A stretch of DNA of 64,000 bases, taken from NCBI GenBank assembly GCA_965637545.1, contig OZ281498.1, forward strand, positions 11,904,001 through 11,968,000. Reading direction: 5' to 3'. Shown here in pieces: positions 41,001-62,700 of this stretch (the first letter of the stretch is position 1; every line of letters starts with the position of its first letter). The DNA comes from Phallusia mammillata. Lineage: Eukaryota. Below the pieces are notes generated by a model, which ran no database searches, was not told the origin of the DNA, and saw nothing but the letters and a program-made list of their open reading frames with translations. The translations under genes were made by a program, and so were the position numbers.

Positions 41001-44000
41001 TACGTAACACATTGCAAATAATTTGAAATTATACATGCACTTGTGTCTTGTCTGTAAAACAAAAACGAAAAGCTATTTTAGAATAAAATGTCATGTTGGT
41101 ATTTCATCCAAATTCAAATAATACTTTTTTATTTGCAGCTTTAATGGAAAGCAGTAAAGATATAAACTTTCCGTGCGCTGGCAAGAATCATAATTGCGAG
41201 GAAGTTTGTATTTCCAAAACTCTTTCTTATCCGATTTGTGCTGGCCAATGTTACCCCTGGGAAACTTTGTGTGTCAACAGGTTAGAAAAATATAAAATTG
41301 TATGCTTATTTTCTAGTGCATTATCTTATCTTAGGTCTATATAATTTAAGGATACTGAATACATAAAAAATCGAATACGTAAAATTTTTGAAATATTCTT
41401 ACCCAGTGTTTTTTTAAGGTGTTTTCAAATTTCTCCAGCGGTTTCCCGAAATTTGTACAAATAATTCGTTTACGCAAATATGGCTATTTTTTGGTATTTA
41501 AATAAAACACGTGCGGTCTCTTAAAACTACTTAGCGGTCACCCAAACCAAACCTTAAAAAAACCCTGTTCTTACCAATATGAGGCATGTTGTCTTCAGTC
41601 GTCATTAGAAATTCAATTTTGTTTCAGCACTCATTCATGCGTGAGCTCTGTTCTTGTATGCGACGGAACTAGGGACTGTCCAAACGGCGAAGATGAGCAT
41701 TTTTCAGTTTGTCCAACCAGTTTGCTGGAATGCGACGACTCGTCAATGTTTTTGTGCAAAAACAAAAAGCGATGTGTAGCCAACTCTTCACTATGCGATG
41801 GGCGGATGGACTGCAGAGACGGGTAGGAATAATTTATCTTGATATTTTTTGTCCGAGTATGCGCCCCTATCTGTTATATCTTGTGACTAAGAAAGTGTGC
41901 AAATAAAAAAAAATGTCTAATGATTTACTCAAATGAAACTATTTTTTACGTATATTTATTCAAGTCAATTCAAACCTGATAATGCGCTGATTAATATATT
42001 TAACAAATATGACATGACCTTCAGTTTTGACTGCCATACTACAGTAACTTGCACAGGAGAGTAATTATTTTGTTCTTTTTCGCACCTTCTTGTTCAAAAA
42101 GTTCGGACGAGGAAAATTGCCCTATTCAAAGCCAAACCTGCGACTTCGAAGACGACTTTTGTTTATGGAGCCAAGCTTCAAACGACGAATTTGATTGGAC
42201 GTTGTGGCACGGTCGAACGCCTTCGAGTAAAACCGGACCTATTCTCGACCACACGATGCTGCGTGTTAACAGTAAGTCGAAATGCAAAATGCTATCTCCA
42301 CTGAGGATTATATGTTTTACAATTGTCAAACAATGTGCACCGGTACACTCTGCTAAAAAAATCCCCATTTTAAGGTACGTATATTTACGCTGAAGCCACA
42401 CCACACGATGAAGGTGCTGAGGCAAGACTGATTTCTACATGGTTGCTGGGTCCAGTTTGCGTCAAGTAAGTGCAAGCTTTGAAAATTTTGTGTATGAAAT
42501 GTACAAAATGATTTGCTTTGCACTACAGCTTCAATTTTAATCCAGGTATTTTTTAAGTAAAACTAAAAATAGGAGGAATAACCTCCAAAGTTCGTTTAAA
42601 ACAACAGACTAAGATAAGAAACGTTTGTTTTAGGTTTTCATATCACATGTTCGGCGAAGGTGTGGGAAGTTTGTCGTTGTTTGTCCAACATCGCGACGAA
42701 CAGAATATGAAGGAAAAGTGGAGTGTCAGCGGCAATCAGGGAGTATTTTGGAAGACATCTTCTGTGTCAATCAGTGAACATGGTCTTTTTCAGGTACGCT
42801 TCGGTGCATATTATGACTCCTTCCTTCTTATCTATGTCAAGAGAAAATAATATTTTTTGCGGCAGGTTGTTTTCCAAGCGGTCCGAGGAAAAGACTTTCG
42901 CAGTGACATTGCCCTTGATGACGTCATGATTAGTGACGGTTTGTGCAAGGTCAGTTATCACTGCTTGTTTGACGGAGGCGAATGTGGTTATGAAAACAGT
43001 AAGTAAGCAATGTTCGATTATATTGATCATACCATAATCTTTGATATGTTTTGTAATATGCGCAGTCAATGATATGGATGGTGGATGGTCGATAAAGTCA
43101 GGATCGCTTCCTTTTGTGGATGAAGGATCTTCGGAGTTTTCTGCTCGAACGAACCAAAATTTACTCGACAAGGTAGCACTTGTTTACGCCAGCACCTTCT
43201 ATACTATAAACAAAAATCCCCAGTACTATACTCTAGTACACGGGTTCTTAACCAGGGGTGCGAGAACTGTTTCTAGCGGGGGCGGGGATGCATGTATAAA
43301 AATTAAATTACCATGGTTTTGTTATTTAAGCAATTACAGAAAGGAGTGCGAAAACTGGTTGGTAATCTAAAAGGGGTGCAGCAAGGAAAAAAAGAACCAC
43401 TGCTCTAGCATATGGTGTTTGACAAGATTAAGGAGTTTTGGTTTATAGACCAACTTTTAGTTTAAAGTGACAATAGCAATTGTGGAAACGTCTAGATCAT
43501 GATATATTCTCTAAAAGCAATATCTCTGGTAGTTATGATTTTGATCATGTAAACTTGTGCTAAAATCAGTAATTTTGGTGTATATTGCATTACCAAATAC
43601 TCACATGTGTTTACAGAATCCAGTTGAGGAACTCGGACCGGAGTGGTTTTATTTTCCTTTCAAGCATGACGACACTCCCGGATGTAGCGGATGTGATGGA
43701 ATCAAACTTGTGCGACAAATTTCATCTTTCGGTGCACCACAGTTTGCAGGCATCGTCCTCTGCAGTCCAACAAGGTCAGTTTTAATCCATTGATAAATCA
43801 GAAATTACAAAGGAATAGCCTCGTGTTTAAATAAAGATTTTCGATGACAAACCAAACCAACAATCTAGTTTTGCGGAAATAATCATGGACTGATCCGTGC
43901 ATTGAGAAATACTTTGTTAAAGATTTAATGTTACGTGCATTTTGACGATTTGTCGTCCAATTTTTGGACTAGTTTTATTTTAATGTTTTTTTATGATTGT

Positions 44001-47000
44001 TGTAATCAGATACAAGATCTATCTGGGTGAAACTTTGCACGGAGTGTTTCGTAACGTGGCTGATGGTTTTGGTTTGGGTGAAGATCACTGCGAGTTTATC
44101 GGTGCCAAGGATTACGCCCATGAAGTTGGAGAATATATTCACTGCCAGGGTATGTCTAAGAAATATCTAGACTGGCATCAGAAAAACTTATATTTGTTAA
44201 ACCAAATCTAAGGCTGGTCGTCGCTGAGATTAGAACGCACAACAATGACATTTTCATTAATGTATTGTTCATGTAGTGTTCAACTTTGGTATGCTTGGAT
44301 TTCTAAATATTAACGTACCAATGGTTCTTTTATATTTGGGCCCAGTGTTTTTTTAAGGTGTTTTGGGGGACCGTTTCAAATTTCTCCAGCGGTTTCCCAA
44401 AATTTGGACTTGCAACTACAACTACAGTTTTTGGTATTTAAATGAAACACTTGCGGTCTCTTAAAACTACTTAGGGGTCACCCAAACCAAACCTTAAAAA
44501 AAACTGTTTAGGCCTATTTGGCTACAGACGAATCGACTTTTTCGAACACGTCGAGGAAGGAATCTTCGGTCCCCATCACAATGGCGGGCATCCTTTCTTC
44601 TCGCCAATCTTCTATGGCTGCAATCTCACCATTCCACAGGCGGTTATTGATTTCGCTCCGGAAAATCGTCGCCACATGGAAGCTAACAGTTTTGCATTTT
44701 TCGACGGGACTTCTCCTGGAAGAGCGACCGCTAGCTTCATTGTCCCCGTTGCTAGAATAGCTGAGAGATCCACACCGGGTGAAGATGCTAAGATGGAAAA
44801 GGAACCACAGTTTGACAGATGGTGCCTTAGTTTTAGGTGAGATATATATGGACAAACTTTTATTTGAACCAATAACTGTATCGTATTTTGTTTGAAATTC
44901 GGTTCTTTTGTTTGAAAATTAACAAACTTGAAAAATCTTGTTTTACAATGTTGCACCATCTATGTCTTTGAATCAGTTACTTCGTCACTGGACTTTCATC
45001 GAAGTCGCTATCTCTTACCGTTAATGGTGAATTTGTAACATGGAAAACTTCAGGCGATGCAAATAACTCCTGGAACGACGCGATTACAAGCATTCCTTCA
45101 TCAGATGTCAAGTAATTGCTTCATGAAGAAACTGTTGTGCAGCTTAAGTTTAAAATTGTTCAGCTAAACCGAAAAACTTATGTTCAGATACAACCTTGTA
45201 TTTACGGCAATGAAGGGTCAAGATGAGACCGGCTACATAGCGGTTGACAACATTACCATTAACCAGATGCCCTGTGTCAGACCTCAGTCATACGTGACTG
45301 AGTTTGACGATTCTAACCTTGACGCAAACTCATTCTTTGTGTTTGGTAAGACATAGTCGGGAAATTGCACAATATTTCAACATAACATATCTTAAAACAG
45401 CACCCAATACATTTCTACAATGGAATGATTCTATTAACCAGAAATGTTTTGTGAACTTACTACTCAGGTACTGTTCACCATGATTTGATGCAACCGCTGT
45501 ACGAACGTAGTCGAAACGACCCAGTGATCGTCGCTAATAGGCCTGAGTCATCTGGTGTGATCAGCTACACATCGGGCCATTACATGTTTCCCCCCTTCGT
45601 TGAAAGTCCAATTCTTCCTGCTATAAGCACTTACTACCCCGTCTACTGCCTTTCAATCGAGTATAGGTATTTAAATTACTGTATCAAGCGACTGTGTTTA
45701 ATTTATTTAAAGGATAACCTTATGAACATACACCTTATTTTGTGTCAAATCGTGAAATGTATCGTATCGTGATAACGCTTTAAAACATGTTTTTTTTTTG
45801 TAATTTAGACAACGGACCCATCAAGGTCAACTTAAAGTTGGAGTTCGAAGAGTACAAGATTTTGATGCATCATCAATAATTACACACACCCTCACTCCAA
45901 TAGCCAGTGTTCGGCCTTGGTTGACTCTGAAGATTGAAGTTAACTCTTCTATTTCCCTGGCAACAGAAAACTCTTTTATAATAGGTATAGTGAAATGAAC
46001 AAAAACAACTCCTTGCCAAAAAGTTGACTTTAAGTTGATTCGAAATAAAAACGACTCGTTGTGTGTTTAATGTGGTAAGGCGCTTATGAAGGCCTGATAG
46101 AATTGTTTTTCACATCAGGGTGGAAAATTTAATAATTTGTCTTTGCACCAGGAAGGTATTTAGGTTGCTTCTAATTCCCCTTTCTTTAGTTTTTGAAGGT
46201 TTACAACACGTTTGGTTGAATTCAATGGCCGTAGACACCCTTCAATGTTCGCAAGTAGATCGTGGAAGTCCATGCAACAATGGGGTTCAATGTTCGAATG
46301 GACGGTGTGTTCATCCAGATCAAATGTGTGATGGATTAAACGATTGTGGGGATTGGTAAGTTAAGACTGGGTTTCGAAGTCTTTTGGGAGCGTTTTTCTA
46401 TACCAACCTATTCTCTTAACGTAAAAAAGACATTTCTCCGTTGAGCTGCCTTTAGACAAAGGGTTTTTGGTTGCTTTTAGTCAACAATTAGGGTTACTTT
46501 AGGTTACAACATTTATATAGTAGATGTTCGTTTCAACAATAAACAACAAATGTCACTGGTTATGGCATGAGCATTTGCCGAAACGTTTGAACAATAAAGC
46601 ATGTCGCTTTTTATGTCTATTTGGGCCGTTATTTTCACCATTAAACAAATGTCTGATATCATCAACATTATTGCAATCTCATCAATAACCGTGGATTTGT
46701 TTCGGAAACCTGTTTTGAAGTTTGTGTACTTGGTAATCTAACACAAATGTATGTCATATTCCAGGTCTGATGAAATTGGTTGTCCATCCCATTGCGGTTC
46801 TATAGCTGATGTGTTTAGCTCTCGTACAACATTGCTTGAGAATAAAGATATTGACCATCCAGTGTTTGGTAAACAATGTTTCTGGCGAGTTCACGGAACT
46901 AAAGGAAAGCAGGTTTTGCTGAACATTGGAAAGTCGTTGGGTTCAAGAAAAGTGAAATTTTCGGTAAAAATGTGTTTGCTTTTTAATATTTCTCTTTGTA

Positions 47001-50000
47001 AACAATCTTGATTTATTTCTGGGATAACACATCTTACTTCATTTACTAGGTTTGGCGTAAATATATAAATTAAAACGCGATAACAGTTTTGGTTTGTATC
47101 TTTTGCAGTTGATCGTATACAAGGGATTTTCGGATATAGCTGATGCTCTTATATTTCCGTCTGAATCAAAACTCTTTCATAAGAATTATTTTTTGAAGCC
47201 ATCTTCATACTTAATTAACGACAATGAAGTCACTATAGTTCTCACGTTTAACAGGTAAACAAATTTACATATTTTCTACTTTAATTCATTATATCTGTGT
47301 TGTTTGTAAGTGTTATTTACAACAACTTCCCTAACAAAATGCATCCTTTTATTTCACTCTTTTGTATCTTTTGACATGCAGAAAAATCGTATTGCCAGTG
47401 ATGGAGCTGAACGTTACAATTGTTGAACCTACCCATTGTAAGTTTGTGTGTCCTGATCTCACTTGTTTAACTGACAACTATCAGTGTGATGGGAAGGTGG
47501 GATGCCCAGATGCTAGTGATGAATCCAATTGCACGCGCGCCACCAACTTATTTGGAGAAACGGTTAGTTCACAAGTAAATGGATTTATTGAGTGAGGTCG
47601 GGTGTATAAGAAACCCTTTTAAAGCATGTACATATATTCCCGATCGCACAGATGTTTCCATATTTGAACTTAATCTTATCCAACCTTAACAAAACATTTT
47701 TTCGGGCAGTTGCTGGAAGTACGACGACTTAACGACAAATTTTCTCTCTTGTGTGGTGATGACGTTACACATGACGTAGCTGACGCGGCGTGTCAGCAGC
47801 TGGGTTACTCGAAGGCTTTGTTACCTCTTCGTTTTATCTCGCTTCCAAAGAAGCATGTCGGTTTTTCGCATTATCGACTTACCGGGAATCTTACCGACAA
47901 ATGTAAGAGGGTTTGGCTTTATGTACCAAATGGAAAAAAAAGTCACATGATTGGAAAATTGATCGATAAACTCCTAATAGCAACACCAGTTGATTTTGGC
48001 GGACCGTTATGAGTTCTAAGTTTCACACATAAAATTTTGTTATTATTATAACTTTACCTTTGTAACATACAAGAAGGTATAAAAAGCACGTATATTGTAA
48101 AAACTTAATCTAAGCGGTTTTGTTCATGTAGATCCGCAGTACATTCAGAGTTATATTACGTCACTCCAAAGCAGAAGAGAAGAAACTTTCAATATTCCTT
48201 CACAAGGTGAATGTTGTATTATATTTTTGAACATTTTCGGAATGCAAAATTATGTAGATTTTTTCTATGCCAAACAATTCCTGGCCTGAACTGTTTGTTT
48301 ACGTTTTTGTGCAGGTATTTCGGCTTGTTCTTCGGGATCAGTCTGGGTCGCTGACTGTGTTCCTTATCAATGCGGAGTGAGATCCATTGAACGGGTTCAT
48401 ACGAAGAAACCGATGCTAAAGATTGTGGGCGGCCAAAAAACTGCAAGAGGTTATTGGCCATGGATTGCTTCATTGCAAGTAAGTGCAGTAACTCCAAACG
48501 TTTGCAAAAGCAAAGTACAGACCATCCTGTACAGGATACGTTCGTGGGCAAAAAGCAAAAAATGTTACAAACAAAAGTATGCAACACTCTTATTTCCTGT
48601 TTTGCTAAAGGCTGGTGGTGGTCATCTTTGCGGCGGAACTCTGATCTCCGATCGTCACGTGATCACAGCAGCGCATTGTTTCGACATAAAGTCGCCGAGT
48701 GAATTTAAGATTGTCTTGGGAACTAATGATCTTGCACCTCTTGATCTCGGGGCAACGACGTACTCTATTGTTGATTATGAAAAACATGAGTAAGTTTTCA
48801 GCAAACAAAATAGTTATGACCAAATACTTAGTATATTCCTTAAGGTATATAGCATTGGGTGGGGGGTTAAAATTAATAAGCTGTTATGAGGCCGGTACAG
48901 AAAAAGCTTTAGAAACATTATTTAGAAAAACAATAAGATAAAAAATAATAGTTTAATTACTTAATAATTAACCAACTAACATATTCTATAATTTTGTTAC
49001 CTTACACTCGTTTGCTTGTGTTTTCATTTTGATACTTGCCTTGAAATATGGCCTATGCTGTATGTTTGAGAATATTCTGTTGGTGATCTTCTGTATATAT
49101 TTTTGTGCAGCAATTATGCGAGTGATGCAGAGATTCCGGATTGGGATATCGCGATATTGGTATTGGACCGTACCGTAAAGTTCACGAAGTTTATCAGCCC
49201 TGCTTGTCTACCGGGCGGAAATATTCGGTTTAGACCGGGTATGTTGTTTATTTAACACATTGTCGATTTGTTGTTTACCGGGATCGAACCTTGTAACCTA
49301 CTTTGTGTATCTCACCAATACATCTAGATTTAAATGTTGAAATAATGAAATGAAATGAAATCGTTTAAATATGAAGTGATTTTATCACAATAAAAAATAT
49401 CGATATGACTAATCGCACATTCTTTTTTCACTAGATACAAAATCCCCAAACATGGCCTATTATATTAGGGTCAATCGCACAAAAGACTTAACAACTACTT
49501 ATGTTTGTAATAATCGAGCACGTTTTACCTCCTTGGCATCTTTAATATATAAAACACTTTTGCGTCTCGAGTGTTTGAAATAGGAAATACGTCGGACACT
49601 GTAAATTGCTGATTATGAGTTATTGGCTTTTGTTTTATGTTCGTTTTAAAAACTTTTGAGGCCATGAACCTTTCTAGGTGTACACACGTACTTTTGAAAC
49701 TAATTTTAAGGACATTCATTTTTTTAACATATTGCATCCAATGCTTTGCACAAATTATAAAAGCACAACTGGTTCAAGATCAAGTACTTTAATAAATGGC
49801 AACAATATTATCCAGCTAAAGTCACTATATGAACATTTTAGGCGACATGTGTTACATTGCTGGATATGGACATTTGGAAGACGACGGAGAAGAACCATTG
49901 GATTTGTTCCAAGCTAAAACACCCATACTTTCTCGCGAGGATTGTAACCGTAGTTATAACAAGAAGATTTCGTCACGCATGATTTGCACCGGATATCCAA

Positions 50001-53000
50001 AGACTGGCAGCATCGGAATTTGTCACGTAAGTTACAAAAAAATAATATAAAGTATTTATCATATACTTTTAGCCTGCAAAATTAATAATCTAATGCGACG
50101 TTTTTTTCCCCTGTAAGTGGTTTGTCTGAGCAGTTGTAACGTTAAAGATATGATTGTGTACGGTTTGTGGTATACGTTCATCTAAACCTTGGTCCATGTA
50201 TATGTCTTTTCTTATTACTTCATATGAATTCTCTGTTTCTCGACGTTCATGCAGGGTGACAGTGGTGGCCCGTTGGTTTGCGAATCCGACGACGGACAAT
50301 GGCATTTGGCTGGAGTCGTCAGCTGGAGCATTGGATGTGCTAAAATCGACAGACCCGATGTTTACGCCAACGTGCAATACTTTATCGGGTGGATCAACAA
50401 ATACGCCGGCATGAGTAGGTTATTCTACTTTCTTTTTTAACAAAATCTCAAACCCCCACACATGAAATAGTTTGCACTAAGCGTGGGTAAAAATATGTCA
50501 CTTAGCATGTCTTCGTTTGCAGATTTGACGCTTCCAGCTCACGAGTTACCTGGTGAATGTGGGGGAACATATTACAATTTAACCGAAGGAATATTCGCAA
50601 GCCCAGGGTGGCCTTCATTCTATCCTCCAGAACAGTTGTAAGTCGTCACAGCGAAAGTTTTGACAAAAATTTTTCAACACTTGTGGTATGTTGCAATATT
50701 GTAAAAAAGCTGTTTTTCAGTTGTTTGTATCGCATTATGGCTGCTCCCGGGCAGACAGTGCGCATTGAGTTCGACACATTCGCGTTGGAAAAGGATTACG
50801 ATTTTGTGACGATATACAGAGGAGGAATAGATCCCACAAATATTTTCATGCGGTTAACAGGCAACAGATCAGGAGGTAAACTTCAGATCACACAAAATCA
50901 TATCAAAAAGTATTTGCATTTAGGGAAGCATATTTTGTTTTTAATCTGATCTCAAAGTCAAACATTCTTCATTTAGGTTAGATTTATTTGAATCATATAA
51001 CGTTGCTTCGAACTATTATTTCTTGATATCGTTTTTGTAAAAAATGCCATCTATGTTATTCATTTTTCCATCAACTGTCTCAATGACTTGACGTTATGTC
51101 TTGTCTACATATAGGCATATTTTCAAATCGTTTTTTTTTTCAGGTGTATTTGAGATCAGCAATGCGACGGTGGAGCTTCTTTTCGAGTCCGACATCGATT
51201 TTTCAAAAGCTGGATTTTTCACGAAATGGTGGACAAGTGGTGAACCTTTAAACTTTACCGGTAATACTTTCAATGCCTGATTTCGTGGTACTGACTTAAT
51301 TTTAAATACCAACAACCATTGTCAATGATTTTAGGTGAAGCGAAACCAATCACAGTTTTGGGTTCAACAACTTCAAATCAGGAATCTGTAAACCTGCTAC
51401 TTGTCGTTGGAAATTACGTTTCTACTGGAATCACCGCATATCGCCCAACATACGAACAGGTTAGTGTGACATTTTTACATGGTGGAACCTATACGTTGAC
51501 GAGATACGTTTTTTTAAAACTGCATACAATTTTTTTCAGGTCGTTTTACTATCAAACATTTCAGTACCAGTGTACAAGATGTTTTTCTACGAACCTTTAG
51601 GCCAGTGGAGAATTATTCCGGGGCATATGCAAGGTATGTCGTATGCGTAAATTCTCTCACCAAAAAGTTAAGAATCATTTTTCCAGTTGGTCAACATTTC
51701 TCAATGTACATTAAGCATTGCATGAACAAGACATTTTTATTGCAGATAACGAGGTTCCACAAGGCATGTGGTTGTATTGTAACGACAGTGCAATTTTACC
51801 TTCTGACATCAAAGTTCCCTGGAGTGTGTGGAACGGGTCGGCTTGGAGCGAAATCGATTTACAAATAGAATTATCTTTCGGTAAGTTTTTTTTTGCTTCT
51901 TGCTTTAACATGTACTTTCCACTGCAAAAATGGTTAAAATTTCGATTAATTCTACTTTTGTTTAAAAGAAAACCACAATTTTGCCCAAGAAAACCTCAAC
52001 GGTCGTACAATTTTTTAGAACCATCAGCAACAACACTTGAAACAACCGCCAGTACTTCCCCGAGTATCATTCCCGTCACAGACAACTTTAACACTACATG
52101 TCCCACGATGAATTATGATGATGCCATAGGAGTCATCGAAAGCCCGGGTTTCCCAACAAAGTTTCAAGTTGCGGTGAATTCAACCTGTCAATGGAGAATT
52201 CAACCCGACAGTAACAACAGTGGCCAAGCGATGCTGATATTGCTGCTTGTCCAGTATTATGACCTCAACGAGCAAATGGAAATATTTTCCGGAGATTACG
52301 TCACTGGAAGTCAACCACTGTCGTTCATCGAACCAAGAAGTATGATGGGTAAGTCAAATAAGTTGGGTCAACACAAGTACCAGAAATTATCCTTGTATTG
52401 TTTTTGGTGTATTTAACTATGGTGGATAAACCAAAGTAACCAAAAATGTTTACTCTGATTCCTTAGACGAAACGTTTCTTATAAATCGCCAAGAAAATTC
52501 AATGGTTGGATCGGGAAATGGTGACGTGGAAATACCAAGTGCTCATCCGCCCACCGCATCTACTGTTTCTCTTCTGTCGCAATCTGATATCAATCGAATC
52601 GCAGGACAGATTGCAGCTCAACCACAATGCCTGTACGTTAAGTTCAATTCTTAACTTCAAAGTTTTTATTATTTGTTTCTAACTTTTTGCATTTTTAGAC
52701 ATTCCTTTACTCGTTTTTCGGCCAACACCTGCTCCAGTGATCTTTACACAATGTTTGACAGCAATACCGACGAAGGAGTAACCTCACTTCTTAATTGCAG
52801 TTTGTTTATAAAGTCAGTTTCCAATAAATACGTGCAGCATTACTGCTATTGTAATTTTTTAATTTCTAAAAAGAAAATAATATTGTAACTAATCTTAGTG
52901 TAAGATGTTTTTGTCAATATGATGTCAATCATATCCACGTTGTGTTGTAAAATTGTGGCATTTTCTTGGTTTTAGATGTTTTAATGTGAGTTGGTGTGAT

Positions 53001-56000
53001 CTGGTTCAGTTTCTTGAGGATCTCCCACATTTTGTCACTTGGGTCGAGGCCACTGAAAATTACTGCCAAGACCCAGCATGGAAGCCACCAGTGCCCAGCA
53101 CTACTTCATCCTTACCAGGTCCTTATTCTACATTTCTGAAAAGTTGCCTAATCGGTCTTACCTTAACATGAGGGGTGTGTCTTCTAGTGTTACACTAAAC
53201 CCTAACATTTCTTGTTGTTTTTTCAGGTAGTTTGCATGATGTTGGTTTGGGAAATTCAACACGTCCCCGAAAACAACTTTTCATCTGCACAGGTAAAAAC
53301 TTATCCTACTTGACTGTGTGTTTCTGAGGGATGAGTCGAACCAAGTATTTACATATGCAAACATTGCTTAAGCATGTGTCAGGCCAAATTTCGGCTCTAC
53401 CACGCGAGCTGTGTTTTCCGTTATGTTATAAATGTGCAACGTGCAAATATTCAACACTTACTTTGGTTTATTGCCGGCAGACACAAGCCAATCTGGTCTG
53501 ACACTCAGACTGAAGTTACTTGGAACATCCACCGGACACGGATTCTCAATCAAATTTCACACGCTTACTGACCTCAATATGTCCCCATACAACCATCAAG
53601 AATATGATGTTCAGCATATTGGAGAAACACGATTCCGTATGTTCATGATTATTTCGCCTCTGTATCTGAATTAATAGACATACTAATGCTTAGGTCGCAC
53701 GATCCGCTCTATCCAATCTGCCGTAGGTTTATCTTTCGGTCATCCGACTAATACTCCGCCTTCAATTTTTGTGGCACGACCAACGACTACAAATCCAGGT
53801 AGTTAATTCTACACAATTTTACTTCATGTATCATATCGCCAAATGTGTTAAAGTTAAAAAAATGTATACTATAAATTGTAGACCTTTATTTGACCCAAAC
53901 AAGCCCAGGGGAAACCCCGTCCCCCTCAGTCGCGCCCCTACTTCGTATCGACCTCACTGCTAATGTGACGTGCGCTGGAACATCGTGGAAATCCGGAGAT
54001 CATTGGTTTATTACGTCACCGAACTTTCCAAAGGATTATGATCAGAATTCAAACTGCATGTGGAAATTCGAAACAGAACCAGGATATCAGGTTGGTTTAC
54101 AGTTAGGTGATAGGAAGTTTTTAACACTATCTCATAGTTTTAATGGATTTGTTAAATCCAATCAAAATTGAAAATTTTAAAAATAAATTTATTTTTTTGT
54201 TGCACATGACTCTTGCGTATGTTACAAGATAAATCCTTGTGAAGTTTAATTAAAGAATACATTTATTTTGAAAAAAGTGATTAAATAAAATTTAAAATAA
54301 GCTTAATAAAACTAAATGTTTAAATTTAGGCTGTTTCCACTAAATTAAGCGTTTACTTGCTGAAGTAGCAAAATACTGGTAGTAACTTTATCTTACCCTT
54401 TTACTTTGCTGTAGATTCTGCTGAAATTTTCCAAAATGTTTGTTGAGGGAGACGTGTCTTGTGGTTACGACAGTGTTTCGTTGTATGATGGACCCGATAT
54501 AAGTTCACCGAGAATTGGGAAATTTTGTGACAGCAGAAACAGTTTTATCCGTCCACAGTTGTCCGCTGGCCCTGAGATGTTTATCCACTTCCGCTCCGAC
54601 CATTATGTCCACATGCAAGGTTCTTTTTACACATGTTTCTGCTTGTGATAAGTAGTCATAATTATAACATAATTATTTGCCAGCACCCACCTCTGTGAGC
54701 GCTTGCACTTAGTAACTAAAGTGAAACAAATTTTGTCAGAAACTATACTAACACTTTTTTGTTGATAACAAAAGATATTAATACCTACAGCTGTAATTTA
54801 CCTGAAACTTTTATTTATTTAAAGGTTTTAAGGCGTCTCTGTCAACCCGCAAAACACCGAAACGAGAAAACAAAATAAGTAACCAGACTGTTCTTTACTC
54901 ATGCCACTTTGATGACGACATGTGTGGGTTTGATGACGAACTTGTGTCGTCAGACTTTACTTGGACGCGGAACCGGCTTTCTACGTCTTCTGAAGATACT
55001 GGACCTCCGTACGACGATTCTCCTATGAGAAACGGTCAGTCGATGATACATTAATGTTGTGACAATAAACCGGCGTAGAAATGTGGATGTTAGAAGCAAA
55101 ATGCTGTAATTATTAAACATTTCTGTAAATACTTACAACATCCATGCATTATCAGCACAAGAAACTTTGTAGTAAAGGTTTAAACCTGCATGTCGCTACA
55201 ATTGGCTAGGCAGTGGGTGGGCAACTTTTTTTTATTCCTTGTGTCAATTTACTTGCAATGTCAAAATGCTTTGCGTGCCTACATTGTTATGTATATAAGT
55301 CATTTGTGACTTTAGATTTGTGGGGTGATTAGAAATCAGACACATTTATATGTGTTCACCTTGTCTTAGGACTACGTCACTCTAAACAAACCTTGTAATT
55401 GTAATAGTCTAATCGTAAAAAAACATGAACTTCTAAATAATTTGGCGTAAGTAATCAGCTCGCGTGTCAGCCTTGGTTGCCTACAGTTTTTGTTTTGGGC
55501 TAGTGTGTTTATCACAAGAATTCCCATCAGAGGTTTTTGATTGTATTTTTTGTTCAATATCGAAAACCTTCCATGATTTTTGCAAATCTGCTGATTTTGA
55601 TCTCAGTCTCACCATTTTATTTTAAGTTGGAAAAGGGAAGTTATGCCTTACAATAGTTTAACAGAAAGTCGCTCATATAGCATTTACTCCATTCTCTTCG
55701 ACTCAATGTTATGTGTTATTTACTTACGTGACTCGGATGAACACAGGTTGGTACGCTTACATCGAAGCCTCGTCTCCTCAACACAAGGGCGATCGGGCCC
55801 GCATTGTCAGCCCGCTTATTAGAGGAACTCCCAACGAGGCACGCTGTCTTCGTTTTTCCTACGACATGTATGGTGGAGCCCATGGTTTTCTCAACGTCTT
55901 TGCTGTCGTGGGCCTTCGCAGGAATCACACGCAAGTCTCGCTGGAGGAAGATGGAACAGAGTCAGTGTCTTCCACCGAACCTCTCGTGTATTTGTTTGGG

Positions 56001-58740
56001 TCGGGAGTCCATGCTGAGAAAGCGGATGAGAGTAACACCAGTGTAACGTGAGTTTCATTATGCTAGCATCGCGTAGTAGAATTTTTTTTTACGGTTTATT
56101 AACTGTATTCTGCAGTAACGTTGTAAATATACCCGTGTAAGTGGTGACTGACACGATGACCACAAGGTCTTTCGGTAATGGTTTCACGTTTTTTAGTTTA
56201 AGAATCCATTTTAACAGTGGCTTGCTACAATTATGAAAATGCTGTAGTAAATATTATTCACTGAATATTATTTGATTCACCAGGTTCCAACGCTTTTTGT
56301 TATGGAGCAGATCAGATCAGCAGCGTAGATTTGACGAAAAACCTTGGATGCAAGCTTCCGTTACATTTTATCCATCCAGCGATTTTCAGGTATTAATTGA
56401 AACATCAACACTTTTGCATCTTTGCATCCTATCCGAGCTTTGCAATTTAAATTTTTAATCCAACGTTTTAGATCATGTTCGAGGGAGTTCGCGGACGAAC
56501 TTACGAGTCAGATACAGCGATTGATAACATGGAGGTTTTAGAGGGAAAATGTCAGGATGAATGTAAAGAGGATGGTCAGCTTCAGTGTCTCACCAACAGT
56601 GGACTAATAAGCACAGGTAAGCGGCCCTATAACATGACTCATGTGTAAAGGGATTTCGCAAGAGTTTTTTTTTACTTCCTAATTCTGTTAAAGCCAATTA
56701 CCCCGAGCAATAGGGCGTGTTATTGGCCTAAACTGCTATGTCCTATTTATTTAAACAACATTAAAAATGCCTCGTACATATACTAACGTCAATGATATAC
56801 AATTATAATTGATTAGTGTGCATGGTTTCTTTAAATCCAAAAACAAATCGTTCCCTCTTTTATTATACCAGAGAAAAAGTAGAGAAAGCGTTCAACACAT
56901 TTAGCTTGATAACTTGGGTTTAGACCTAAACATGTAAATGTGGTGTTGGATTAATTTCTTCCGATTTAACATGGTATAGTTCAAATCAAATATTGACTGA
57001 CACAATATAATGTGTAGTGGTAAATCTGGAGTTTCTTTATGTTTTGCCTTATTAATCCGACAACGTTATTTTAGGCGAATGTGTCCCAATCATGTTGGAG
57101 TGCAACGGTGTGAAGGATTGTGCAAGCGGATCTGACGAACTATATTGCATCACTACTTTACGCCAGATGTGCGCGGCAGGTAAAAGAAATTTGTAGATCA
57201 AATCAATACCTCCAATATATTATGTTGTTGTTCTCCTTTAATACCAAATTATTTTATCAAAATGTCTACGCCGCGCAACGAACATTTGAAATCATAGTCG
57301 ACACCAACATCTTGTACGGTTACATGGTTAAACATGTACAATTCATTTCAATTGTGCAGAGACGATCCAACCCAATACGACACTTGCACTTGTTTGTGAC
57401 GAAAAACACGTTGATCAATGTGGTTTGTCATCATCTTCCGTAACCCGGATTGATCAAATTATTTGTGATGGAAAAATTGATTGTTTTGGTGGATACGACG
57501 AAGCTCTGTGCCCAGAAAAACAGACAAACGCAGAATCAGAGACTGTTATTAATGCTCTTCATGGTGATTGTGGAATTCAAGATGCCGAGGGAGATGAAGT
57601 GTCAGCATACCCGGTATTGAAACCTTTATCAAATTTCGCCAATAAGATTCTCGTTTATAAGCTGTCCTATTTTTACTTAGATAAGGCTCAACCCCTTTTT
57701 TAAATTTGCAACCACTGTCCTATGTAGATATTGGTATTATTAGTTTATAAACTTGTGAAATTAGTTTAACCCCGTTTTCAATTTCAATGCTCTATTTGTT
57801 CAAATTTTTAACTGACGATACTTTATCAGAACGTGCCGAATTCGGAACTGTGGCGATGGGTTGTCGGTTTGTACGTTGCCAAACCAAGTCTGGTTAAATC
57901 GAATGGACACACAACGAGCACTGGTGTTTCGTCTTCGGCCTATACTTTCTTGTGTAGTGCTGTTTTTATCCAAGATAATTGGGCGGTTATCCCAGCTCAC
58001 TGCATTTTAAACCCTGATCTGTACGACAACTACGCAAGAAGCTTGTTGGAGGCCGATAAAACCGGACCAGATGGAGAACTGTTAGCAGGTAAGTTAGAAA
58101 AGGCAATCCGCAACACACGAAACGCGACTAACGATATTTCTCTCAGAGTTCGATGACCCAGACCTGGATGCCGAAGTCCCTGCAACTTTCTCGTACATTC
58201 TCATCAGAAATCGAAATCCAAATGTGGAAACAACAGCTAAACGGGTCACGTGGAGGGTCACAAACTGGTTTATTCATCCCGACTATGTAGTTCGCCCTAA
58301 CAGCAGCACTTCAAGAAAAGATCGGAGATCTTCGTCGACGTATTTTGATCGTTTCAAGACACTGACCGAAGACAGTGATTCAGCCAATAGTGACGTCGCT
58401 CTGCTGAAAGTCGAGCTCGATGACGAAGTGTTGTCCCAAGTTGACGTCAGCCCCAACACCGGTGACGTAGTTGAGGAAGAAGAAATGTTCTATGTGACAT
58501 ATGACGTCAGCATGAATGTCACCGATGAAGCACCACCGTCGTCAGCATGTTTAGAGTTAAAAAAGAAGAAAAAAAGAAAGCGAGGGTCTTCCAGTGGGTC
58601 AAGTGCGTTTCCTTTACCTGTGGAACTTGAGCGACATCCAATTTCTTCTTCGGAACCAGAAAGCACAAAACCGCGAAAGGCGACCTGTATTGCAATAGGT
58701 CATTCCCCAGTCACCAGGTATAAATACTTGCATGTTTCCG

Positions 58741-58796
<56 letters not shown>

Positions 58797-61700
58797 CACG
58801 GGGTGCGAACCCAGGAACCTCCCGGGGACGAATCCCGATCAGGTTTTTTATGTCTGTATATGGGTCAGGCGCGCCAGGCCATTCGGCCAAGTTCCTGCCC
58901 ATGTTTCCGCCTCTTGCTTTATCCTCATGGCATTTTTTTTCTTTCAAACTCTAGCGGATTGGAGGAAAACCACTTAGTTTGGAGCTTACGCCAATCCAAG
59001 ATTTCTGTGACATCGTCAGAGATCAGTACTCCACATCTATTCTGTGACACTTATCAACTTCCTGAAATGCGAAGGCTTTGCCTCGAGACGATTACATACG
59101 ACCAAGGTAAGATTTGTCACAAGTTGAAGAACACTATTTAATCCAATGCTAAATCACAGTTTGAGGTCGTTTTGCGCTAAAAAATGTAAGGACGACTTGA
59201 AGCCATGTGAGGACTCTCATATTGCAACGGTTTTGTTTGCCCAAGCAGCAAACATTCACACATATATGCTATGTCGTGAAACAGACTAAGTTATTTGACG
59301 AGGTAACATTGACCATTTTACAAAAGACTTTAGGTTTGGTCGAGCTTTCCAACACCATATTGAGTTGCCAAACGCCAAGCTTGAATAAGAGATAGTTGGT
59401 ATCAAATGCTCGACTTACTCTGGCATTTCCTTTTCCAAAACTACTTTATTATTGTAATACATGCTGCAGCAAGTCAACGAAATTATTTTCATTCATAGAA
59501 TCACCTTCTGGCATCGGCTCAATGAGACTCAATACCACAATCCGGGCTGGACATAAATCTGTTCGAACATCCGCTTTTCTGGTAAGTTACATTCCAACGC
59601 AAGGTCATATTTATCGTTTTCCACTGACACCAAGCTTTTTTTCTAGAACGATCCGGGACTTTCCCTATTTTGCAAGCGACACGACAACCGATGGTTTTTA
59701 ACTGGACTCTACAGTTGGATAAACTTCAGAAGAAACTTTATGATGCCTAATTACACGTCTATACTGAACAACATGCATAGTAAGAATAGTTTGTTGGACC
59801 TCATTTAAGCATGCGGGTAGCTTGTGATCTTTCCTGGCCACTTTTGCTAAGTACCTAGCAGTTGCAATCTGCTTTCTGTCACAAAACGTTCATACGAGTT
59901 TTTAAGTAAAGTGGCACTTATGACACCTTAAGACCAATACCATGACCTTCTTTAGGTGAAAGTTAGCAAACTTACTGGGAGTATCTTTACACAGTCCTTT
60001 TGCATGCCAACTTTGTTTAATACTAACACCGCAATTTCGCGTCCCTCTTCTCTCCAAAGCTTTGCCTTGCTTCCGATTTTCACTAATCCGTCTTTATCTT
60101 GTGAAGACAGTGGCTTACTGTCTATTAATTCTCCAGTCTGGCCGAATGACGATCCGACTCTGGGCGTTCCGATGGGCACAGACTACTTTCTACAAGTCAC
60201 CCAAAGACATAACGAATGGATCGACAAGTTACTGACCGACGGTAAGCAACAAGAAGTATAACGCAATTGCGGCACTGTGAATGACAAAAAACACGAACCG
60301 ATGACTACATGTGGGTCTCCAATGTTGTATTCTGCAATTATTTTTTTTCTGTCAATTTCTGTGGGTCTTACAACAAAAAAGGGGTCCAGTAAAACAATCA
60401 CAGTACGCCAGGCCCATTGAAGGCGCCATACCGAATCAGCCGGTCACCAAGCATTCACCACTATATGGCAAGGCGTAGGTTAGAAAAATCTAGCCTGCGG
60501 TGGGATTCGAACCCACGACAGGAGTCTTTCCAGTAAAACAAAAATTAATTAAAGCGACCCATGCACTGAAACTATTTTTTTTATCTCGTCCAGTCTTACT
60601 GTTTGCCTGAGCAATATGGACAACTCTGTGAAATAAATAAAACAAAAGTAATCTGGTTTGAGGAGGCAGTTGCCTTGGCAACGGCTTGTTTTGTTTAATT
60701 TTGCGGAGTAAGGCGTTGTTTTGTCAAACGATAGAGCTTTATTGTTATTTAAAGAAGTCACACATCACATCAAGTTGCAAATAATTGTCTTTGATTTTTT
60801 TTAGTGCATTTTGTGCCTGCAAATTGTACCGCGAACAATAATGTTGTTTGTTCCGCAGCATAAAAAAAATACTGCAATATATAAAGGTTGGGAAACATTA
60901 TATTATATATTACTTTACTTTTCTTATTTTTACATTTATCAATTGTATTGCTTTCCATCAGCCTGTCCCGGTCAGTTTTCCTGTTATCCTGTCGAATCAT
61001 TGCATCCGGTCAAATGTATTCCTCATAAATCAATATGTGATGGAAAAGTGGATTGTCCAATGAACAACGCCGATGAAAACAACTGCACTTCTGGTTGTTC
61101 TTACAATCCCACACACGATTCCATCCACCGCTACTATTCTCGCCTTTCTTCATCTGGTGTCGTGCTACCCGAAGGGGCAGGTCTTGTGGATTTGGAAGAT
61201 TATGACGATGCCACGCGTTCCTGGAGAAATGAATCGGTATTTGGTGTTCAAAGGATTCGATTTAATTTGGTCGACTCTCCAGGGCCACCTAGCTGCCGAT
61301 GGGTGATACAACCACCACCTGTGAGTGTTTCCAAAATGTTACCATTATGCTAAAAAATGCTGTTGTAGCTTTGTGCAATTAAACTTAACTAATTACTACA
61401 GGTTATTCTTGTGCATTTTTTGTCGAATGAAATATATACAAGGTATTTTCGATCCTAAATTAAATAGGTTTACCGACACTGTTTCAAACTTGTCACGGAT
61501 TTGATTTCTGTTTTTTTACACTTCTTATAAAACCAAAGTACTTCGATTGCAGGGCAAAATAGCCGTGTTAAGAATTCCAAAGATGAGCGTCAGTCCTGTA
61601 TTAGGGGGTGGCAACATTCAAATCATAAATCAGGAAAAAAGGTTTATTCACGACTACAAAACGGAATCGGCATCTTACTTGTCGTCGCCTGGGAAACCAA

Positions 61701-62700
61701 TTGCTTTTTCACTAACGCCACCTCCCGGTATAAAACAATTGACTGCATTAAGGTAATCTTTTTAAAAGTCATAAAGTATGTTTTTCGGCAATGGATGGAA
61801 AATAAGTTTTGAGTTCGATTTGTAGATCGCGCTATTTTGATTATTTCCTTGATGAAGTTGGAATGTGCACTGGAATGCACAAATGTTCTAATGGAAAATG
61901 CGTGTCGTTACACAAGGTATGCGATGGGGAACTTGACTGTGCTGATATGAGTGATGAACAGGAATGTTCATCTGGTAAGTCTTGGCTAGTCTATAAATAC
62001 TAAACGGTTTTCCTATTCACCTAAAAAAACATGTCTTCGTCATATAAAAATCTTTTTGGTAAAATAATTTAGTTCTCATCATGCGATAATTTAAAAAAAC
62101 ACATTTACTATCGTGCTTCCAACTTGATGTAATATACGGTTGTTGTGCATTTTCATTACATTATCTAACGGTTCCACAGGATGCGGCGGTCCCAGTCTCT
62201 TGGCAAACACGATTCGTGGTTCCATTATGAGCAGAAATTACCCACTACCTCACTATGGATCCGGTGATTGCATGTGGATGATTGTTGGGCAACAGCAGCA
62301 AACTGACACCACAACCGAGGGATCAACTGAATATTCCTTATCTATTGAATTCAGCGAATTCAAAACCTCGCACGACAATGACGTTTTGTACGTATATGAC
62401 GGCGTTGGAAAAGATAGAACTTTGCAAGGTAAATCTTGTTGTAGTTGTTGTTTTTAATTTTACTCAATTTACGTTTTTTTGACTATGTGTTCTGTGCATT
62501 CGAATCTGCTGCTTATTATGTGTAAAGTAAGTCATTATCTATCATCCCCTTTTGCAGACACATATTACGGAGAGCGTGGAGTGTTTAACATCAATGTTCA
62601 AAATGATCGAGCCACGATAATACTTCGCAGCAATGACGACATCGCCATGAGACGAATCAATGCCACATTCTACCTAAACGCAATGGACTCGTCCGTTTAA
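35077..62700 (+). CDS. Giant secreted mosaic serine protease (about 72 exons, about 4,100-4,200 aa) with one active and one inactive trypsin-fold domain
   Basis: ATG 35077 starts a signal peptide ([21 protein letters not shown]). I traced a phase-consistent GT-AG exon chain to TAA at 62698-62700, with a few boundaries approximate (for example near 47901, 57613 and 59963). Domain order from motifs: VWA, about 3 FN3, YWTD repeats, EGF-like, 2 LDLa, MAM, MAM with an insert, degenerate MAM, LDLa, CUB, LDLa, SRCR, protease (IVGG 48422; TAAHC; DIA; GDSGGP), CUB, unknown module, split CUB, CUB, MAM, 2 LDLa, protease homolog, LDLa, CUB, LDLa, CUB. No transmembrane segment was seen. Confidence 0.85.
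35170..36330 (+). other. VWA domain of the mosaic protein (exons 1-4)
   Basis: DLVLLIDG..., [31 protein letters not shown] show the typical VWA strand/helix pattern. The MIDAS DxSxS reads DGNLN. Confidence 0.8.
36594..39146 (+). other. About three FN3 domains of the mosaic protein
   Basis: [19 protein letters not shown]; [19 protein letters not shown]; [10 protein letters not shown]...[17 protein letters not shown]. Confidence 0.75.
39441..42120 (+). other. YWTD (LDLR class B) beta-propeller, EGF-like module and two LDLa repeats
   Basis: [16 protein letters not shown]...VYWSD, PVGLSVD...[25 protein letters not shown]; [12 protein letters not shown]; [13 protein letters not shown] and [16 protein letters not shown]. 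Confidence 0.85.
41404..41567. mobile_element. hAT-type MITE, family A, copy 2 (164 bp)
   Basis: Same TIRs as 13623-13759; perfect TSD TTCTTACC. Confidence 0.92.
43239..43402. mobile_element. hAT/Charlie-type MITE
   Basis: Termini CACGGGTTTCTTAACC / AAAGAACCACTG; TSD CTCTAGTA vs CTCTAGCA (7/8), close to the NTCTAGAN preference of Charlie elements. Confidence 0.75.
44343..44506. mobile_element. hAT-type MITE, family A, copy 3, inserted at a 3' splice site
   Basis: Same TIRs and body as the other family A copies; TSD TTTGGGCC (44335-44342) vs TTTAGGCC (44507-44514); the right copy contains the AG acceptor of the exon starting at 44512. Confidence 0.9.
48422..50405 (+). other. Serine protease domain 1 (S1 family), catalytic triad intact
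   Basis: QCG...PMLK/IVGG activation site, WPWIASL, LCGGTLI, TAAHC (His codon 48674), WDIAILVL (Asp 49145), [11 protein letters not shown]|GDSGGPLVC (Ser 50261), [17 protein letters not shown]. Confidence 0.95.
57560..60241 (+). other. Serine protease homolog domain 2, predicted catalytically dead
   Basis: DCG with no IVGG; [26 protein letters not shown] (His 57998), [15 protein letters not shown] (Asp 58392), SACL. The GDSGGP equivalent reads NDPGLSLFC (Pro at 59653), followed by WFLTGLYSW and [13 protein letters not shown]. Confidence 0.85.
58747..58899 (-). mobile_element. Young tRNA-derived retroposon (SINE or tRNA retrocopy) with a poly(A) tail
   Basis: Perfect 16-bp TSD CATGTTTCCGCCTCTT (58731-58746 and 58900-58915); about 50 T on the + strand; 103-bp head on the minus strand with A-box TGGCCGAATGG and a B-box-like GGTTCGCACCC. 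Confidence 0.9.
60400..60525 (-). mobile_element. Truncated tRNA-related repeat (SINE-like fragment)
   Basis: The minus strand reads GTGGGTTCGAATCCCACCGCAGGC (T-arm with B-box and an acceptor 3' strand) followed by a GC-richer body. There is no matching 5' half of a tRNA. Confidence 0.5.

Follow-up and report, generated by a model that had tools for sequence, protein, structure and literature searches.

The MAM domain is known from enteropeptidase, the meprins and RPTP mu/kappa, and in enteropeptidase it forms part of the layout SEA-LDLa-CUB-MAM-CUB-LDLa-SRCR-protease. Another extracellular module, the Target of Nesh-SH3 C-terminal domain (TARSH_C, Pfam PF21731), is found at the end of the matrix protein ABI3BP/TARSH and, according to an earlier note on the DNA described here, also of FNDC1. 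TARSH_C is an orphan module, and we know of no function assigned to it. Nested domains are uncommon among exon-shuffled extracellular mosaics, and described cases include the integrin alpha I domain in a beta-propeller, the integrin beta I-like domain in a hybrid domain and the laminin L4 domain in LE. To our knowledge, neither MAM as the host nor TARSH_C as the guest of such nesting has been described, a statement that is based on empty searches and not on a domain-architecture survey. Here we describe a gene on the + strand of a 64-kb stretch of DNA (the window; contig OZ281498.1) of the sea squirt Phallusia mammillata, animal DNA with introns, in which a TARSH_C-like domain is present between two pieces of MAM sequence in a protease. 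The earlier note had read this as a domain nested inside the second of two MAM domains (MAM2). All peptide strings that it quoted were located on the + strand where it had placed them, and its insert at about 43617-44635 agrees with the TARSH_C-like core, which we place at 43644-44636. The features are the following.

42139-42946, + strand: MAM1, a canonical MAM of 155 residues on exons 42102-42271, 42375-42465, 42634-42793 and 42866-42998.
42866-42998, 43066-43172, 43617-43774, 44010-44149, 44512-44836, 44977-45111 and 45188-45345, + strand: the exons around MAM2, read at 42840-45420 in the three forward frames.
42962-42998 and 43066-43103, with an intron between them, + strand: the N piece of MAM2, 25 residues with the MAM start pattern.
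43104-44681, + strand: the whole insert, 179 residues with six cysteines.
43104-43172 and 43617-43643, separated by the intron 43173-43616, + strand: linker 1 of the insert, 32 residues.
43644-44636, on 43644-43774, 44010-44149 and 44512-44636, + strand: the TARSH_C-like domain, about 134 residues with six cysteines.
44637-44681, + strand: linker 2 of the insert, 15 residues past the expected end of the TARSH_C profile.
44512-44836, + strand: the junction exon, which holds the end of the insert and the resumption of MAM2 with no intron between them.
44682-44836, 44977-45111 and 45188-45275, + strand: the C part of MAM2, 126 residues.
48290-50437, + strand: the trypsin-type protease domain of the same gene (Pfam PF00089, E 1.6e-12 and 1.6e-13).

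The likeness of the insert to ABI3BP/TARSH had been put forward in the earlier note and is now supported by two collinear PF21731 matches. Pfam scans were run exon by exon, and the gathering cut-off of PF21731 is 27 bits. Exon 43617-43774 matches profile positions 1-41 (E 1e-4, 23.4 bits) and exon 44010-44149 matches positions 40-80 (E 1.4e-12, 48.9 bits), so that successive exons give the profile in order and the second passes the cut-off alone. The domain also conserves the YKIYLG..GEDHC core. Up to CNLTIP (44636) there are 48 residues left, and 47 positions (81-127) are left in the 127-position profile. Linker 1 showed no family match in Pfam, and no second copy of TARSH_C was found in the window. 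One could argue that the PF21731 match is due to chance or composition and that the insert has no relation to TARSH_C, being a cysteine-rich loop specific to the lineage. The last third of the domain has no PF21731 match, a PDB sequence search with the core exon and the junction exon gave no relatives, a feature search of the ESM Atlas gave no usable match, and word searches with the 121-residue open reading frame (ORF) and the 75-residue core ORF gave none either, all of which would agree with such a loop. However, two separate exons match the same family at consecutive profile positions, one of them with 48.9 bits against 27, and the leftover length agrees with the leftover profile. A chance match is therefore very improbable. 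A metagenome scan with the core exon returned a single locus (L002, 10001-10090), on a bacterial contig of 64% GC, where a 30-residue, out-of-frame match falls in an ORF whose opposite strand carries an overlapping short-chain dehydrogenase gene; this was rejected as chance. A literature search on PF21731/TARSH_C and on ABI3BP with FNDC1 yielded nothing about the domain.

Compared with ABI3BP/TARSH, the Phallusia copy is similar in having profile positions 1-80 in order, the core motif and a cysteine-rich extracellular setting, and its host likewise has fn3 upstream. It differs in that it is internal, lying between MAM sequence in a tunicate protease and not at the end of a matrix protein, and in that the profile does not detect the last third. 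The C-terminal location that the family name implies is thus not found here, as at least 600 residues follow, including LDLa, SRCR and trypsin domains. The PF00089 matches of the trypsin-type domain confirm that this TARSH_C is present in a protease, as had been claimed.

The seven exons spanning 42866-45345 have canonical GT..AG borders and compatible phases and are joined in frame. Together with three upstream and seven downstream exons they make up 17 exons (42102-47898) with a stop-free ORF of 944 residues. The two core TARSH_C exons measure 158 and 140 nt (298 nt), and skipping both results in a frameshift. Sequencing contigs were aligned to 41950-47900 (6 kb), with X1, X3 and X13 being RNA-like and coming from three studies and X11 being a DNA run. 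The RNA nature of the runs is a guess, made for seven runs from two studies, and the four runs of the third study are of unstated kind. Of the words sampled from the stretch, about one third are present in these runs, which roughly equals the exon share. RNA fits, because contigs of X1, X3 and X13 are confined to exons and have GT..AG joints that are not present in X11, whereas coverage by X11 is continuous across the whole aligned region. The depth of the RNA-like contigs is 0 at 43343-43541, within an intron, and the bin depth falls at the exon ends 43172, 43774 and 44149, as expected, with fractional depth in those bins.

Two single contigs carry the N-piece exon, all TARSH_C exons and the exons of the MAM2 C part. 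In X13 record 13 (1030 nt), letters 801-958 lie on 43615-43772 and letters 336-659 on 44511-44834, and the 141 intervening letters correspond exactly to exon 44010-44149, allowing for one base shared per border. In X1 record 1 (2158 nt), 537 letters separate 42793 from 44511, which is 133+107+158+140 minus one shared base. The joints of 42793 with 42866 and of 42998 with 43066 are directly visible in RNA contigs, and those within the insert, which are among 13 joints not viewed directly, were derived from this arithmetic on record coordinates. Upstream of 42101, X3 record 15 adds mRNA sequence of about 3.1 kb, and X3 record 17 and X13 record 14 continue far past 47900 downstream. We conclude that the joined form, with TARSH_C inside MAM2, is real and expressed. 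The joints not viewed directly leave room for other isoforms and the RNA label is a guess, so that the gene model might be an artefact, with the TARSH_C exons coming from a different transcript, from a nested gene or from a rare isoform, and with MAM2 uninterrupted in the main mRNA. This is hardly credible, given the two single contigs and their exact arithmetic. Moreover, the end of the insert and the resumption of MAM2 lie within the same exon, the frame is broken when the core exons are skipped, and no exon for the missing MAM loop was seen in the introns when read in the three forward frames.

For the host domain, MAM1 serves as the comparison. Three of its four exons match PF00629, at profile positions 1-38 (E 3e-7), 77-129 (E 5e-9) and 130-158 (E 2e-4), its exons scanned singly score 21-37 bits each, and among solved structures it is closest to the enteropeptidase heavy-chain MAM (8H3S, E 2e-7). 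The N piece of MAM2 begins five residues after the last cysteine of MAM1 and reads C-x-F-D-x3-C-x-Y...W, that is C-x6-C followed by W. In the window, the MAM start pattern C-x-F-D/E..C-x-Y/W..W occurs only in MAM1, in this N piece and in a third MAM at 54902, and it arises in 11 of 20,000 shuffles of the 525-residue model. At the other side of the insert, the last 83 residues of the C part match MAM1 (BLASTP of MAM1 73-155 against MAM2 252-330, E 1.4e-8, 31% identity), and the last MAM2 exon, scanned alone, matches PF00629 at 128-157 (E 8e-5, 23.0 bits against a gathering cut-off of 26.4). MAM2 ends with the cysteine at 45273-45275, and from its first cysteine (42962) to this last one there are 330 residues. 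Without the insert, 151 residues remain, compared to 155 in MAM1, and these align with MAM1 from end to end with a score of 96, against 11 +/- 5 for shuffles. The four MAM cysteines are retained in register with MAM1 (C-x6-C, WCLSFSY and the final NQMPC), and the 179-residue insert replaces an 18-residue loop of MAM1 that bears TGPxxDHT. MAM2 resembles the MAMs of enteropeptidase, meprins and RPTP mu/kappa in its C half, its four cysteines, its insert-free length and its tandem placement, and differs from a canonical MAM in the replaced loop and in an N piece and middle that have diverged past profile detection.

Conservation could be followed across the 3' border of the insert. RNA contigs of X1, X3 and X13 span 44511-44834 in the junction exon. 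An exhaustive phmmer search with this exon against 1.84 billion representatives gave one genuine relative, the 124-residue ORF fragment P0001, which is 34% identical along the full length of the exon (E 2.5e-10). Two other matches, to an ankyrin-repeat protein and to a bacterial repeat protein, were rejected as repeat-driven. P0001 lies on L001, a 22-kb contig from a JGI metagenome, where it is followed by the two later MAM2 exons and then by the unnamed-domain, LDLa, CUB-like and LDLa exons, in this order. Because these downstream exons are collinear and 38-60% identical, the sequence identifies L001 as an orthologue from another ascidian-like animal, and the border between insert end and MAM resumption is therefore conserved. 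The last TARSH_C part is conserved in P0001, and so is the motif PQAV(I/L)D of linker 2. Within Phallusia, all six differences between RNA contigs and window in the junction exon are synonymous. Over the 6 kb aligned, 31 single-base differences between the window and RNA contigs of different studies were listed, the species being highly polymorphic, and some of them alter amino acids in MAM1 and in the N piece of MAM2. Very high-copy repeats occupy parts of two introns (44338-44536 and 46527-46725), where the DNA run reaches word depths of about 436,000 at most. The first of these stops about 5 nt before the acceptor AG of the junction exon (44510-44511), and many contigs break or jump there.

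The reading that we favour, with moderate confidence, is that of a true nested domain, in which N piece and C part form one MAM sandwich and TARSH_C is looped out of MAM2, adding a binding surface. Several observations weigh against it. Taken alone, the N piece has no Pfam match, 238 of 5,000 shuffles equal its score against MAM1, and its BLASTP E value is 0.29. The first 46 residues after the insert are not significantly MAM1-like, and the middle of MAM2 has no Pfam match alone. In TARSH_C itself, profile positions 81-127 were undetected when the third part was scanned alone, both in the window and in P0001. On L001 the sequence stops 1 kb before the junction exon, so that the TARSH_C core and the N piece are beyond view there. 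The polymorphisms in N piece and linker comprise three amino-acid-changing and no silent changes, as opposed to none and six in the junction exon (small counts), with Ser-to-Pro changes at 43098, in the last residues of the N piece, and at 43131, in linker 1. Constraint on the N piece may accordingly be weaker. Finally, the role of a looped-out TARSH_C is entirely inferred. The claim in the earlier note that the flanks are two halves of one MAM is supported by the MAM start pattern, the cysteines, the length and the C part (E 1.4e-8); the N piece alone does not reach significance.

Alternatively, the domain may be nested by history only, TARSH_C having landed in MAM2. The N piece would today be a loosely constrained remnant, and linker 2 and the C part (about 141 residues) would together form a reduced MAM-like sandwich, so that the working layout would be MAM1, remnant, TARSH_C and an N-terminally reduced MAM-like sandwich. 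The lack of significance of the N piece and the polymorphism contrast (three changing and no silent against none and six, Fisher 1/84) are in line with this. Linker 2, with its conserved PQAV(I/L)D, also contains an IDFAPE string that could be a first strand, and the next domain, at 45346-46240, is MAM-sized and has no N-terminal cysteines, suggesting that reduced MAMs may be tolerated in this protein. On the other hand, the N piece retains both cysteines and the tryptophan at MAM spacing, and the polymorphism counts are very small. From IDFA to the next strand there are only 11 residues, compared to about 35 in a MAM, so that one strand would be missing. We consider nesting by history alone the main alternative, less likely than the structural reading.

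If nesting is structural, as we favour, a disulfide-rich TARSH_C module with its two short linkers, 179 residues in all, would occupy the loop after the second MAM strand in the second of the tandem MAMs of a large, enteropeptidase-like mosaic serine protease. The N piece, with the first disulfide and the tryptophan, would pack with the C part, which would carry the second disulfide, into one MAM sandwich, and TARSH_C would be looped out as an independent globule. Such an arrangement would be similar to the integrin and laminin cases in that a whole globular module is looped out from a surface loop of a beta-rich host, although host and guest folds are different. It could have arisen by insertion of TARSH_C-coding exons into a MAM2 intron, followed by loss of the intron at the 3' border, so that a single exon now crosses it. 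The looped-out module may provide a matrix- or partner-binding surface beside the MAM face, which would help in tethering the protease or in substrate selection, in the way that the modules of the enteropeptidase heavy chain do. It is also conceivable, but in our view quite unlikely, that ascidian enteropeptidase-like proteases share MAM[TARSH_C] as one conserved structural unit, with TARSH_C serving as a built-in exosite or matrix anchor.

The host protein, as judged by Pfam on its exons, has the order VWA, fn3, LDL-receptor class B (YWTD), two LDLa, MAM1, MAM2[TARSH_C], LDLa, LDLa, SRCR and trypsin. Inspection by eye adds an EGF-like exon and a start resembling a signal peptide (about 35060), and with this predicted signal peptide the protein is probably secreted. 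In the protease domain we found K/IVGG, TAAHC and GDSGGP, only the catalytic His and Ser motifs having been looked at. Like enteropeptidase, the Phallusia host contains LDLa and MAM, followed by LDLa, CUB-like, LDLa and SRCR modules and a trypsin domain with the K/IVGG activation site. It differs from enteropeptidase in its N-terminal half, where VWA, fn3, YWTD and EGF modules and a signal-peptide-like start replace the membrane anchor and SEA, and also in the number of MAMs (two or three) and in the TARSH_C insert.

Between MAM2 and the next LDLa there are 168 residues (45346-46240, on exons 45468-45666, 45809-45984 and the start of 46190-46355). This stretch has the length of a MAM, includes CLSIEY and ends in a MAM-like way, but the N-terminal cysteine pair is missing. 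It has no Pfam match, its BLASTP E value against MAM1 is 0.13, and its identity to L001 is 46% and 38%; it may be a degenerate third MAM. Exons 46765-46963 and 47109-47254 are kept in L001 (51% and 60% identity) and are CUB-like by position and cysteine pattern, and neither gave a Pfam match at E 0.01 when scanned singly. Further downstream, there is another canonical MAM at 54902-56555 on the + strand, with LDLa modules beyond it, within 57332-62000. RNA contigs of 8.3-8.5 kb reach about 6.9 kb of mRNA beyond 47900, so past the trypsin domain either the gene continues or the contigs fuse two adjacent mosaic genes.

What is new here is the arrangement, with TARSH_C internal, MAM as the nesting host and both in a protease; the domains and the type of protease were already known. 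The empty searches fit this novelty, at a sensitivity that is limited for the fast-evolving junction exon. That TARSH_C is expressed in such a different setting shows it to be a portable, self-contained extracellular module. Tunicates are the sister group of vertebrates, and with this protease the question of what TARSH_C binds can be asked in a second context. The gene structure also illustrates how such insertions originate, since one border is still at an intron and the other has been merged into a single exon. Pending fold and function, the case is a lineage-restricted curiosity. Should a conserved MAM[TARSH_C] unit indeed exist, with TARSH_C acting as an exosite or anchor, this would be the first instance of a MAM hosting a nested domain, and it would offer the first experimentally tractable function for the orphan C-terminal domain of vertebrate ABI3BP and, if the earlier note is right about FNDC1, for the end domain of that protein as well.

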